Source of the DNA: Salpingoeca rosetta
Taxonomy: Eukaryota > Protista > Choanoflagellata
Assembly: GCA_033442325.1 (NCBI GenBank)
Contig: JAWQFM010000015.1
Span: forward strand, 940,741-980,821
Length of the DNA: 40,081 nucleotides
Direction of reading: 5' to 3'
A program made the position numbers and the translations under genes. Below the pieces are notes generated by a model, which saw only the letters and a program-made list of their open reading frames with translations, did no database searches and was not told the DNA's origin. Shown here in pieces: positions 22,312-32,331 of this stretch; within the stretch, counting starts at the first letter, position 1; each line of letters starts with the position of its first letter.

Positions 22312-25300
22312 TCAGAGCTGCAGCTTCTGCTCCAAATCGCTGAAGGATGGCCGCTGGGCCGGCTTTTGCGCCATGCACTCGTATGTCAATGCCTTGAACC
22401 ACTCGGGAAGGGCTGCTGCGTGCATGTAACATGGTACAATGCATGCAGGTAGAACGTATGAGAAAGGGAAACGTGGTGCTTGTAGACATCATATTCGAGT
22501 GACATCGCCACAAACACACACGCAGGCACACACACTGCACATATGCGCACTGCACACACACACACACACACACACACACACACACACACACACACACACA
22601 CACACACACACACACACACACACACACACACACACACACACACACACACACACACAAAGAAAACTCACCATCGTCGAGGTCTTTGCCATCGTCAAACTTG
22701 AGACGCTTCCCGTCCGCCATCAAGCCGCTGAGTGTGGCGAGGATCGGCCCAGTATACTCTGCCCCAAGCTCTTGCTCAATCAGGTCAGGCACGCGCTGTG
22801 TGGCCACCTCCCACATCAGCACGCCAAAGCTGAACACGTCTGCTTCAAAGCTGTACTTGTCGCCTGTCAGTGCCTCTGGTGCCATGTACAGCGGCGTGCC
22901 CACACCAGCTGTTAGCGACACACTCGTCATCGTTTGCTGTCCAGTGCGCGGGCTGTACTGGGGATCGTCATGGCGACTGGAAGTGGAAGAGAGGCGCGTG
23001 CCCTGTTGCTGTTGTTGGTTCCTATCACGCGTCAAGCACTGGCGGATGGATCCAAAATCCGTAATTTTGGCGCGAAGCGATGATGACACGAGTACGTTGC
23101 CGCTCTTCAGATCGCTGTTGGTGTTAATTTTGGAGGTGGGATGGTGGCGGGTGAGTAGAAGGAGAAGGCGGGCGGTTACAGACGCACATGCTGACAGACC
23201 ACGCACACACACGCACACACACACGCACGCAACACACACACACACACACACACACACACACACACACACACACACACACGCACACACACACACACACACA
23301 CACACATTCCCACCGGTGCATCTGGTCGAGGCTGTGAATAAAGGCCATGCCGCTGGTGACGTCACGTAAGAGTCGAACTCTCAAGTCCCAGATGCTTGAG
23401 CCGGGTAGACCGCAAGCAGCTGTACTCACGAGCGTCAGCTCCTCCGAGACATCAGATGCAGTCACACCCTGATCTGCATTGTCTTCCCCACAATTGTTCT
23501 TCTCCTTCACCAACACGTCCTCTAGATCCCTCCTCAGCAAATCCTTGAGCGACCTCATCGCCACAAACTCCAGCACAAGGAATGGGCTGCCGTTGGGATC
23601 CGTGCCCGCCCCAAAGAACCGCACCACGTGTGGATGCCGTGTACGCTGCAAGAACTCCACCTCCTTCTCAAACTCAACCACCGTGCTCTCGTCAAACATC
23701 ATCACCCCTTGCTGCAGTACCTTCACTGCCACCGTCACCGTGTCCCACTGTGCCTTGAATACCACGCCACACGCACCCGCAGCAACCCGTTTGATCATCC
23801 TCAGCTCATCGTACTCGATCTCCCACACCTTCTTCAGTGCCATCACCTCCGCGTCTCGCTCCACCAGCAGCTGCTCCTTGAGCGCGTTGTCCGTCTGCAG
23901 GCGTCGCTGCCGCTTGTACGTCCAGTACACAGCAAACAAGAGGCCCTGGAACGCAAACACGCCCGCCAGCGTGCCCAGCACCGCTGCTGTGATGTCGCGT
24001 GTCACGGGCTTGCAACGGCCGCCGCTGCGGGCATACCCGCGTGCACAGTCGCAGGCGTGGTAGTACGCCAATCGATACTCCTGCTGCAAGAGATTGGAGG
24101 TCAAACGCGTTTTCAAATGCGTGAGCTCGAGCTGGCACGAGATGGGCGTGCCCGTCAACTCCACAATGGGTATGTTGGCCCTGTTGTCCAGCGCAACAAA
24201 CTGCCGCGTCAGCACTTCGTCGCTCGAGAGGACGGTCAGGTCGAGTGTAGCGTCCTCAACCAGCCCGGGTTTGTCGAGCCATGAGTTATCGCTGAGATCA
24301 AGCAGCAGCACGTTGCTGTACACAAAGCACCGTTCCAACATCGAACGCACACGCTCGCGCGATGCTATGAGCGCGTCACTTTTCCAGTTCCTCGCCACCA
24401 CCACCTCGCTGCCCCACTGGGAACACAGCGAGCGCACGGGGGGCACGCGCGTGCCGCTGATGTCGAGAATGTCCGCGGTTGGCAGTGCCAGCTCGTGCAG
24501 ATTGGTGCAGCCTGACACGTTGAACTGCGACACGGGCGATGCCACACGCAGGCTCTCCAGCTTCGGGTTGTTCTGCAGCAGTAGCACGTCAAACACGTGG
24601 TCGGGGCACAGGTTGAGGTGCTTGTACCCGGTGTTGGTCAGCTGCAAGGTGGTGTCAAGCGGCTTCAGGAAGCGGCAAATGTCCTCCATTCGCACGGTCG
24701 CCTCGTCCATGCCCGGCCAGCCAGCGTAGAAAGCACCAAGATGCACGCGCACATTGTCGAAGAAGAGGGGCGTAACCTCACGCACGTCCACGTTGCGCAC
24801 ATCCAGCACGCGCAGCGGCGTTGCCAACTTGTTGCCGACAGTTGGCGCGACCTTGATCGTGGCTGGCGGCATGTCTGGGTGGGCGGCAACCTCCAGGCGC
24901 CACAGCTCCGTCAGGTCCACGACGGCATTGAGGTTGAGGTGTGACACACGGTGGTTGTTGAAGTAGAGTTCCCTCAGGGCTGGGAACTGCAGCAGGTCGG
25001 GCAGTTCTCTGAGCCGGTTGTCGTTGAGGCGGATGGATTGAAGGTTGGGGAGGAGCGGGAACGACGGCAGGGTGGTTAACCTGTTGCTGGCGAGGCTGAT
25101 GTGCTTCAACAGCGGCAGCCGCTCAAAACTGCCGGCGGGAAGGGAGCGCAGCCTGTTGTTGCTGATGTCGATGATGCGGAGGCTGTCATGGTCGCGTAGC
25201 ACCTGGGCAGGGATGCTGTTGAGCATGTTCTGCTGCAGGCCCAGGCTTTCTAGCCGCGGCAGAAGTGCCGGGAGATTAGGGGAGATGTCGGTCAGCTCAT

Positions 25301-30500: not shown

Positions 30501-32331
30501 GGTCAAGGATTGCCAGTCGCGGGTGGTCGTGAATGGAATGCAAAATGGTGGCGTCGAGCAGGTTGTGCTGTGCTTGCAGGCTTGCCAGCGCCGGTGCGGT
30601 TGGGAGCAGCTCAGCATCCACGTGTGTGATTTGGTTCTGGAACACGGTCAGCTGCTCCAACGCCAGGGCACCGTCGGCAAACCACGCACGGTCGACACGT
30701 CGCAGCGCGTTGCCCTCCAGTCGGACGATCGCCAGCCGCGTGAGCGACGCAAATATTCCGGGCGGAAGGCTGGAAAGTTTATTTCTGCTCAGGTTGATGT
30801 GTGTCAGTCGTGTATTGTGTTGAAAGGCAGACGCTGGGACATGGCCAATCTCGCACTTGTCCAGGAAGATGCGCTGCAAGTTGACGAGGGGCGCGAGGGC
30901 GAGCGGTGGAAGCGCGCCAATGGGGTTGCTCCAGAGTTGCAGGGCAACCAGGTTGGAAAGGCCATTTGCAAAGGCGCGTGCGGGAAAAAGTGTGAGGTCG
31001 TTCTCAACGAGGTTAAGGGTGCGCAGGAGCGTGAGCTGTGCAAACGCGTTGTCGTGGATGCTGCTGATGTGGTTCTGGCGAAGGAGCAGAATGCTGAGCT
31101 GCGTCATGCTGGCCAGGGTGGTGTTGGTGATGGTGGTGAGCTGGTTTGCGTAGAGGTCGAGGGTGACGACACGCTCCATGCCGGCAAATGCGTCGCTGCT
31201 GATGTGTCGAATGCTGAGAAAGTTGAGACGCAGCTCTCGCAGAAAGGCTGCACGAAGAAATGGCTGCTCGCTCGCGTTGCGACGCAGGGCCACGCGATTG
31301 ACGTGACCATGGGTGATCTGAAGCCCTTGCAGCACAGGCAGGGGGTTGAGTATGTTGAGGTGAAGGGCGGGCACCTCCATCCCGTTGATGATCAGCTCAG
31401 CAGCTCGGTCCCACGTTCCGCTGTCCAGCACCCACCGCAGGTCGTCCTCGAGCACCACGCCGGACAGGCGCAGGTTGCGCGGGCGCCACGTGGCTGTCTG
31501 AGCTTGAAGGTACTGTGAGGCGGCTGCAACGTCATCGGCGCCCTTGTTCTCTCGCGCGTCTGTCACCAGCGGGCCCTCCTCCAAGGAGGTGTCAAACACA
31601 ATCTCCAGGGTGGCTGTGGGCAACGTGGAAGGAGGATAGCTGCAGTTGCGCTTGAGGATGCTTGATAGTGTGCATGTTGGGTTCTCAGGATCAAATGGGT
31701 CTTCTCGCCGCACGCGCGATTGCATTGGGTGCGTATGGTTGCGCGCGTTTGAAGTGTGTGATGATGATGATGCTGATGATGATGATGATGATGATGATGA
31801 TGATGCTGCTGATGATGATGATGATGGTGGTGGTGGTGGTGGTAGGTCGGAGTCGGAGTGGCGATTAACGGCAACTGGGCGTCGTTTCCGATCAGGAGTG
31901 GGCTGGGGTGTTGGTGTCGTTGTGCTTGTTAGGAGAGCGGCTTCCTTGATGTGTCTGGCGCCTTGGTGTGCCACGCTGCAGAAGTGTGCGACGATGGTAA
32001 GGAGTGCTTGAGCCTCAGGTGTGTCATCCTGTGCCCTCACCAATGCAACTTTTGCTTGACCACACAGCTTGTTGTGTTCACGTGCGCTGATGCCCAAGCA
32101 TGCCAATGCGGCGTTAGGGCTGCAGGTGGTGTGCGGATTCGAAGGCGACAAAGGAGGAGAGCGTGCGCCAGTCTTCTTCTTGGCGAAGGTGTGCGTGTCC
32201 AAGTCGCCGTTGATTGCTGAAGCGTCCGTGACGGTCAGGGGAGCTGCCAGGACGAGAAGCCAGACTGATGACAGCAACAAGCACTTAAGGGGCATCGTGA
32301 GCCCGTGCCCACTGCTGCCACACACTCCCAT
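27548..32331 (-). CDS. LRR receptor-like Ser/Thr (TKL-type) kinase 2, tandem paralogue of kinase 1. Exons 32331 (or 32295)-28679, 28379-27955, 27654-27548
   Basis: Signal peptide MPLKCLLLSSVWLLVLAAPLTVTDA, LRR array and TM AAVLGTLAGLLAFQGILFAAY. Kinase motifs VAAGAFGVV, VHR|DLKSGN, DFG, GTPLYMAPE and RPSF. Both introns match those of kinase 1 in phase and approximate position. Confidence 0.93.

Follow-up and report, generated by a model that had tools for sequence, protein, structure and literature searches.

The 40,081-nucleotide stretch of the choanoflagellate Salpingoeca rosetta analysed here (GCA_033442325.1, contig JAWQFM010000015.1, positions 940,741 to 980,821; hereafter the window, in which all positions are numbered unless a contig is named) contains two adjacent genes for single-pass receptor kinases with leucine-rich repeat (LRR) ectodomains. 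We assign a probability of roughly 0.9 to the reading that both are tandem members of a large, choanoflagellate-specific family of such receptors. In each gene the LRR ectodomain, one transmembrane (TM) helix and the N-lobe of the kinase are continuous within one exon, the catalytic motifs are intact and the kinase has its affinities in the tyrosine kinase-like (TKL) group; the family to which they belong has about 80 loci in this genome. The original prediction, that of an LRR receptor with a TKL kinase in a choanoflagellate, resembling the plant receptor-like kinases (RLKs) by convergence, is correct. It is also already known, since two members from Monosiga brevicollis, Mb34096 and Mb25375, were published in 2011 as LRR receptor kinases (LRR-RKs; PMC3268121) and both S. 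rosetta genes are annotated. Beyond the published point lie the size of the family, the patchwork gene conversion of its kinase half and a design that combines a constant kinase with variable ectodomains.

Gene organization

The two genes lie head to tail on the minus strand, with 488 bp between them. Their adjacency and outer limits had been predicted exactly: in splice-resolved models, the gene 1 stop codon ends at position 22312 and gene 2 has its first ATG at 32331. Large open frames on the minus strand cover 23124-27059 and 28531-32508, each with shorter frames downstream that hold the remaining kinase parts. With splice junctions read from the DNA, the frames close at 1431 codons for gene 1 and 1394 codons for gene 2, each with a single terminal stop.

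22312-27059, minus strand: gene 1, LRR-TM-TKL receptor kinase, 1431 amino acids (tblastn with public protein P0006, splice junctions, Pfam LRR_8 and PK_Tyr_Ser-Thr)
27059-23314, 23114-22669 and 22415-22312 (including stop), minus strand: gene 1 exons
23115-23313, minus strand: gene 1 intron 1, phase 2, within the Arg codon of HRD, carrying (TG)n
22416-22668, minus strand: gene 1 intron 2, phase 1, after subdomain X
27548-32331, minus strand: gene 2, paralogous LRR-TM-TKL receptor kinase, 1394 amino acids in the present model
32331-28679, 28379-27955 and 27654-27548 (including stop), minus strand: gene 2 exons
28380-28678 and 27655-27954, minus strand: gene 2 introns 1 and 2, phases 2 and 1

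The kinase is thus split by two introns in each gene, at identical positions and in identical phases, and all four introns have GT-AG boundaries. All four also contain (TG)n/(CA)n microsatellites (23200-23306, 22553-22656, 28552-28678 and 27816-27940). Long arrays of the same kind occur at about 20 further sites across the whole 40-kb window.

The gene 1 product is 100% identical over all three exons (tblastn) to P0006, a public 'TKL protein kinase [Salpingoeca rosetta]'. With family matches that are almost all S. rosetta TKL kinases, this identity settles the choanoflagellate origin suggested beforehand. Both genes are annotated with LRR and kinase Pfam domains in GCA_000188695.1 (scaffold GL832969.1), where gene 1 likewise has 1431 amino acids. 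The public model of gene 2 has 1192 amino acids, starts at window position 31725 and lacks a signal peptide. Beyond that start the frame stays open as far as 32508 and offers two ATGs, 32331 and 32295, ahead of a signal-like hydrophobic segment; the N-terminal region of gene 2 aligns weakly to the N-terminus of the paralogue P0001. We favour the longer model because of this open frame and the weak alignment to paralogue N-termini; the public start is probably too short.

It is scarcely credible that either gene is a pseudogene or a wrongly joined model. Some paralogues elsewhere do carry in-frame stops, the Gly loop of gene 1 has an unusual Cys, and the missing signal peptide of the public gene 2 model could be read in the same sense. 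However, the exons of both genes are uninterrupted, their GT-AG introns sit at conserved positions and phases, every catalytic motif and every invariant family cysteine is retained, and the frame upstream of the public gene 2 start is open and includes the signal-like segment.

Architecture of the ectodomain

Both proteins share one order of parts: a signal-like segment, a variable N-terminal region, LRRs, an EGF-like Cys motif, a single TM helix and the kinase. The original prediction had described the same succession of signal peptide, LRRs, stalk, TM helix and kinase, which Pfam matches, motifs and the predicted fold now corroborate, with the signal peptide recognized by eye. The joining of ectodomain to kinase had been named beforehand as a decisive test. 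Ectodomain, TM helix and kinase N-lobe share one exon in both genes, so the DNA itself demonstrates the fusion and no transcript evidence is needed. The notion that ectodomain and kinase belong to separate genes was rejected, given the single open exon that covers all three parts.

26982-27059, minus strand: gene 1 signal-peptide-like hydrophobic segment (MRRHLHACPLVLLIFVLFVLALIGSG), read from the translation
24780-25900, minus strand: gene 1 block of 24-residue 'typical' LRRs, about residues 385-760 (Pfam LRR_8, 8 stretches; 24-residue spacing)
24054-24842, minus strand: gene 1 membrane-proximal family-specific module, residues 740-1002, predicted as an irregular Cys-containing LRR solenoid ending in a long beta-hairpin
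24012-24053, minus strand: gene 1 EGF_2-like motif CDCARGYARSGGRC
23913-23987, minus strand: gene 1 TM helix (helix at residues 325-345 of the fold model)
32220-32295, minus strand: gene 2 signal-peptide-like segment (MPLKCLLLSSVWLLVLAAPLTVTDA), 12 codons past the first ATG at 32331
29338-29379, minus strand: gene 2 EGF_2-like motif CQCAQGYEHRGGRC
29239-29313, minus strand: gene 2 TM helix

The signal segment is followed by a low-complexity, variable region of 250-330 amino acids, Ser-rich in gene 2, in which Pfam found no match in either gene except the low-complexity SR-25 in gene 2. A dibasic RxRR-like site stands where homology among paralogues begins, at about residues 222-228 of gene 1 (RVSRPRRD, near window position 26380) and about residues 205-209 of gene 2 (RVRRE, near 31715); 'RR' is also present in the family consensus of alignment A1. 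This might be a proprotein-convertase site.

Pfam LRR_8 is matched with E values of 1e-47 and 5e-42 in the two genes, each with multiple LRR_8/LRR_4 matches. The repeats of both conform to the typical class, with the consensus LxxLxLxxNxLxxLPxxxF and 24-residue spacing, and the plant-specific motif N-x-[LFI]-[ST]-G-x-[IL]-P was found in neither ectodomain. Among solved structures, the best relatives of the gene 1 LRR block are LRRC15, IGF-ALS, SHOC2, LGR4 and TLR3/13.

The membrane-proximal stretch of about 270 amino acids has no Pfam match. Modelled with a 38-sequence family alignment, AlphaFold2 gives it a mean confidence (predicted local distance difference test, pLDDT) of 94 and places an irregular LRR solenoid, a long beta-hairpin, a small EGF-like unit and the TM helix in succession. 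Its best Foldseek matches (SDS22, LRRC8, TLR7/8 and FSHR) are weak, with E about 1e-3, and all are LRR proteins. Because this stretch is also predicted to fold as an LRR solenoid, the model indicates an ectodomain that is LRR throughout. The stalk motif C-x-C-x2-G-Y-x6-C follows in both genes; its cysteines are invariant in the 38 family members of alignment A1, and both genes retain all invariant family cysteines. The TM segment, beginning AAVLGTLAG, is likewise found in both.

The kinase domain and its class

Both kinase domains are complete in their catalytic set: the VAVK Lys, the alpha-C Glu, the HRD Asp, the catalytic Asn, the DFG Asp, APE and the subdomain XI Arg, with DVFSFG also present in both.

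22342-23825, minus strand: gene 1 kinase domain, split by two introns (Pfam and motif placement)
23760-23783, minus strand: gene 1 Gly loop, AAGACGVV
23721-23732, minus strand: gene 1 VAVK
23318-23096, minus strand: gene 1 HR|DLKSGN, across intron 1
23051-23059, minus strand: gene 1 DFG
22874-22900, minus strand: gene 1 GTPLYMAPE
22342-22353, minus strand: gene 1 RPSF
27587-29151, minus strand: gene 2 kinase domain, laid out as in gene 1 (Pfam and motif placement)
29086-29109, minus strand: gene 2 Gly loop, AAGAFGVV
29047-29058, minus strand: gene 2 VAVK
28683-28361, minus strand: gene 2 HR|DLKSGN
28316-28324, minus strand: gene 2 DFG
28154-28180, minus strand: gene 2 GTPLYMAPE
27587-27598, minus strand: gene 2 RPSF

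Two inserts enlarge the domain, one of 67-80 amino acids between the hinge and HRD (80 in gene 1) and one of 45-50 amino acids in the activation segment (50 in gene 1), the latter rich in Ser, Thr and Tyr. The proteins end 9-12 residues past subdomain XI, with almost no C-terminal tail. All of the family has a degenerate Gly-rich loop, AAGA[F/C]G. Because this loop is atypical, with Ala family-wide and Cys in gene 1, activity is assumed rather than shown, and we regard the kinases as catalytically complete and putatively active.

Several lines of evidence place these kinases in the TKL group. The Pfam model PF07714 (PK_Tyr_Ser-Thr) scores 51.7 and 67.7 bits against a cut-off of 23.1, and Pkinase is matched in both genes as well. 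Each exon served as a separate query, with P0006 as an additional one for gene 1. The best solved relative is Arabidopsis CTR1, a Raf-like TKL kinase (E 2e-11 for the N-lobe exon and 2e-8 for the C-lobe exon), with TAK1, A-Raf/KSR, LIMK1, IRAK4 and various tyrosine kinases (TKs) ranking below it. Against P0006, CTR1 reaches E 4e-23 and is the sole kinase among the best 60 matches, the 60th of which stands at 1.8e-20. Beyond the choanoflagellates, the closest matches are Ser/Thr kinases of amoebozoans and of giant viruses (Marseillevirus and Pandoravirus), an oomycete TNNI3K-like kinase and a red-algal STY46. Family members bear the public names 'TKL' and 'TKL/DICTY4'. The S. rosetta kinome of 469 kinases was classified manually into 376 Ser/Thr kinases and 93 TKs (PMC4054682), and the 'TKL' names presumably stem from that classification by the genome authors.

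The predicted Ser/Thr type of the kinase is upheld by the motifs HRDLKSGN and GTPLYMAPE, by the CTR1 affinity and by the position of the TKs. The S. rosetta TKs used for comparison carry HRDLAARN or HLDLAARN together with PIKWMAPE or PVRWAAPE, that is, P-[IV]-[KR]-W-x-APE, and the TK catalytic-loop motifs HRDLAARN and HRDLRAAN are absent from both genes. A quick maximum-likelihood tree (IQ-TREE, 63 rows and 294 columns) puts 35 choanoflagellate LRR-kinase rows on one side of a branch with a support of 98 in the Shimodaira-Hasegawa-like approximate likelihood ratio test (SH-aLRT). Three S. rosetta TKs with HRDLAARN form a separate clade, also at SH-aLRT 98, and it excludes the family; clustering with TKs was the outcome that would have told against the original prediction. 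The sequences P0099, P0116 and P0004, whose extracted regions contain two kinase domains or long inserts, were excluded from the tree.

The TK reading was rejected on these Ser/Thr-type motifs and the separate TK clade. A broader alternative holds that the kinases are really TKs or members of the RLK/Pelle-IRAK group, which would make the proteins true homologues of receptor tyrosine kinases or plant RLKs instead of convergent forms. It can draw on the N-lobe exon, where PK_Tyr_Ser-Thr outscores Pkinase, on the TKs and IRAK4 among the weaker PDB matches, and on a single plant DUF26-RLK that falls in the same loosely supported (85) neighbourhood of the tree as the family, with no IRAK among the rows. 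Yet CTR1 ranks above IRAK4, a lectin-RLK and every TK; the HRDLKSGN and GTPLYMAPE motifs differ from those of S. rosetta TKs; the TK clade excludes the family; and the Monosiga members form a separate, lineage-specific clade in the tree of Diévart et al. 2011 (PMC3268121). We therefore consider this alternative highly improbable. Within the TKL group, its placement is provisional.

Some points weigh against the interpretation of these genes as Ser/Thr-type TKL receptors. The gene 2 start in the 1394-residue model differs from the public one and was set from the DNA alone, and the signal peptides of both genes were assigned by eye from the translation. Throughout the family, Ala replaces the first Gly of GxGxxG, and in gene 1 the loop Phe is exchanged for Cys. 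The tree comes from a quick search with thin references, in which a single sequence represents the plant RLKs and none represents IRAK, Raf or MLK. Ser/Thr-type motifs are also compatible with dual specificity, and autophosphorylation on Tyr can occur in TKL receptor kinases that share these motifs. The kinase is thus best described, from its motifs and affinities, as a Ser/Thr-type TKL that is possibly dual-specific.

Patchwork conversion of the TM/kinase half

The two genes differ sharply in how far their halves have diverged. Their ectodomains share about 30% protein identity, whereas the juxtamembrane segment and N-lobe are 96-98% identical. Among codons for identical residues, 86-94% are themselves identical in the juxtamembrane/N-lobe segment, compared with about 45% elsewhere.

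23538-23999, minus strand: gene 1 TM/juxtamembrane/N-lobe conversion tract, 462 bp, 93% DNA identity to gene 2 at 28864-29325

A similar pattern links gene 2 to the P0001 paralogue, 555 kb distant on the same contig: in a global alignment, DNA tracts that are 97-100% identical are interrupted by a 200-bp patch of about 70% identity. These patterns of identity are those of patchwork gene conversion of the TM/kinase half.

The P0001 gene itself (G000:C15:1525500-1531142) stands at the very end of contig C15 and contains the TM/juxtamembrane/N-lobe segment in two copies about 780 bp apart, at about 4075-4757 and 4785-5477 of L001. The doubling reflects either a genuine partial duplication accompanied by conversion or faulty assembly where the contig ends.

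A large family in S. rosetta and other choanoflagellates

A protein search with the stalk, TM helix and N-lobe of gene 2 retrieved 75 proteins, nearly all with LRR and kinase Pfam domains. Of those whose source is named, almost every one is a 'TKL protein kinase [Salpingoeca rosetta]', and a few come from Monosiga brevicollis; the others include open reading frames (ORFs) from choanoflagellate transcriptomes, among which full-length LRR-plus-kinase ORFs occur in other species (for example P0042, P0063 and P0065). The Monosiga matches have E values of 1e-47 to 1e-37 with this query, and Mb25375 reaches 3.5e-46 with a kinase query. MONBRDRAFT_34096 and MONBRDRAFT_25375 are the Mb34096 and Mb25375 of the Diévart 2011 supplement and fall in the same clade of our tree as the genes described here.

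The size of the family in this genome was gauged with the juxtamembrane and N-lobe segment of gene 1. It yielded 87 genomic matches, about 80 of them at E<1e-28 and about 67 within open frames of at least 900 amino acids. The matches are clustered on contigs C27, C25, C4, C24 and C15, and at least 54 annotated S. rosetta proteins have LRR and kinase domains. Our literature search found no paper that discusses this expansion in S. rosetta.

Two further observations concern relatives of the kinase module. In P0073, P0113 and P0115, related modules are attached to Kelch-type, non-LRR ectodomains. On contig C21, a family-like kinase N-lobe with 48% identity (G000:C21:1118650-1119021, plus strand) is followed 5 kb downstream by a TIR_2 match (C21:1124259-1124468, plus strand); the pair could represent a gene of Kinase-TIR or Kinase-TLR (Toll-like receptor) type, or two separate genes.

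Comparison with known LRR receptor kinases

The closest published counterparts are the LRR-RKs of Monosiga brevicollis. Diévart et al. 2011 (BMC Evol Biol 11:367; PMC3268121) searched 77 eukaryotic genomes and reported non-plant receptors of the LRR-TM-kinase type from oomycetes, Ectocarpus, Chlorella and Monosiga. Of 15 Monosiga proteins with LRRs and a kinase, 11 had a TM segment and 7 were classed as LRR-RKs. The non-plant receptors formed lineage-specific clades, from which independent acquisition of LRRs was concluded, and the Monosiga members occupied a separate, unresolved clade of their own (PMC3268121). These Monosiga proteins belong to the same family as the genes described here, with the same order of signal peptide, LRRs, TM helix and kinase and an ectodomain of LRRs only, and the published alignment displays the signature FEKE..FLQRTRHP..VRFFGAG that both S. 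rosetta genes also carry (PMC3268121). The scale differs, however: about 80 loci in S. rosetta against 7 Monosiga LRR-RKs amount to roughly ten times more copies, and the two genes of the window are, in addition, arranged in tandem, with a converted kinase half.

Like the S. rosetta proteins, plant LRR-RLKs such as BRI1 and FLS2 join an extracellular LRR solenoid through one TM helix to a non-TK kinase in the cytoplasm, whose catalytic loop is of the HRD[LI]K type. Both families are large and have variable ectodomains, and their signalling logic is presumably shared. Nevertheless, the kinases described here appear nearest to Raf-like CTR1/STY-type TKLs rather than to RLK/Pelle. Their LRRs are of the 24-residue typical class, without the LSGxIP repeats of plant receptors (LxxLxxLxLxxNxLSGxIPxxLG), and the ectodomain ends in an EGF-like membrane-proximal cap. 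The likeness had been taken as architectural and possibly convergent, a view that the CTR1/STY affinity, the typical-class LRRs, the choanoflagellate clade and the published analysis (PMC3268121) all support. CTR1 is the closest solved kinase domain for both kinase halves, at modest identity, but it is cytoplasmic, and the family differs from it in the large inserts between hinge and HRD and in the activation segment.

Oomycete LRR-RKs (Phytophthora, Saprolegnia) are likewise non-plant LRR-TM-kinase receptors built on a lineage-specific kinase clade. Their kinases constitute the oomycete-specific 'clade III' (PMC10463195), and they stand apart from the Monosiga family in the Diévart tree (PMC3268121).

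Combinations of LRRs, kinase and TIR have been described in 21 choanoflagellates by Richter et al. 2018 (PMC6040629), including 'Kinase TLRs' of the order LRR-TM-kinase-TIR. Kinase TLRs and animal TLRs share with the genes described here typical-class LRRs, as indicated by matches to TLR3/13/7/8 in sequence and fold, and a single TM helix; in Kinase TLRs the kinase also follows the TM helix. In contrast, both genes of the window lack TIR. No TIR or TIR_2 match was found in the contig range of the window, the nearest on C15 being 200 kb away, and none of the family proteins among the matches listed has a TIR Pfam domain. A TLR or Kinase-TLR reading was rejected, with no TIR in either gene or in the window.

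Possible signalling and function

The architecture is that of a type-I membrane receptor: a signal peptide, a variable N-terminal region, typical LRRs and an irregular Cys-containing LRR block, then a beta-hairpin/EGF-like cap, one TM helix, a conserved juxtamembrane segment and a complete TKL kinase. If these proteins work as other single-pass receptor kinases do, a ligand bound by the LRR solenoid may alter receptor oligomerization, upon which the kinases could trans-phosphorylate the Ser/Thr/Tyr-rich insert of the activation segment. The signal would then pass to cytoplasmic substrates, with neither TIR nor a death-domain adaptor involved. On an evolutionary scale, the ectodomains diverge fast, and gene conversion keeps the TM/kinase half near-identical.

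What these receptors sense can be addressed more tentatively. They may form a repertoire resembling pattern-recognition receptors, one that senses bacterial or environmental molecules and is convergent with the LRR-RLKs of plant immunity and development. Extracellular LRR solenoids like those of TLR, LGR and LRRC15, a family of about 80 loci and a conserved kinase beneath fast-diverging ectodomains are all consistent with such a role. Choanoflagellates moreover lack MyD88 and IRAK, and kinase-linked LRR receptors have been suggested to offer a streamlined way of sensing extracellular cues, bacteria among them (PMC6040629). On the other hand, LRR ectodomains serve also in adhesion, hormone binding and cell-cell recognition, and ligand, expression or genetic data were found for no member. 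Microbial or environmental sensing is accordingly a possibility that we hold with low confidence.

Signalling directed at other choanoflagellate cells, as in cell-cell or colony recognition, mating or settlement, appears rather unlikely in place of microbe sensing. Under this alternative, ectodomain diversity would provide recognition specificity between cells. The presence of the kinase module on Kelch-type ectodomains suggests a general receptor chassis, and patchwork conversion with rapid ectodomain turnover is typical of recognition loci as well. However, the family also occurs, with fewer members, in M. brevicollis, which the S. rosetta genome paper (PMC4054682) describes as single-celled.

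A more speculative extension, which we consider doubtful, is that the family of about 80 genes constitutes a germline-diversified repertoire of bacterial sensors, perhaps including receptors for rosette or mating cues. S. rosetta responds to defined bacterial cues, and to our knowledge receptors for those cues have not been identified so far. If true, the sister group of animals would possess an independent LRR-kinase surveillance system, beside those of plants and oomycetes. The architecture itself indicates that the closest relatives of animals couple TLR-like LRR ectodomains directly to a TKL kinase and not to TIR plus IRAK. LRR-kinase receptors thus arose independently in several eukaryotic lineages, as was already pointed out for Monosiga in 2011. 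What could still matter is how far the family has expanded in S. rosetta and its design of variable ectodomains on a constant kinase.

Genomic surroundings

Annotation of the flanking DNA (about 1-22000 and 32600-37060 in the window) lists MUS81 (HHH_8/WHD_MUS81) and a gene with an ERCC4 domain on one flank. On the other are an SH2-plus-PH adaptor, RPAB4, a septin and a protein with a myosin head and SH2; these neighbours have no obvious tie to the receptor genes. The G+C content falls to 0.43-0.44 at window positions 2001-6000, against about 0.55 elsewhere, and that segment contains long ORFs on both strands without a Pfam match.

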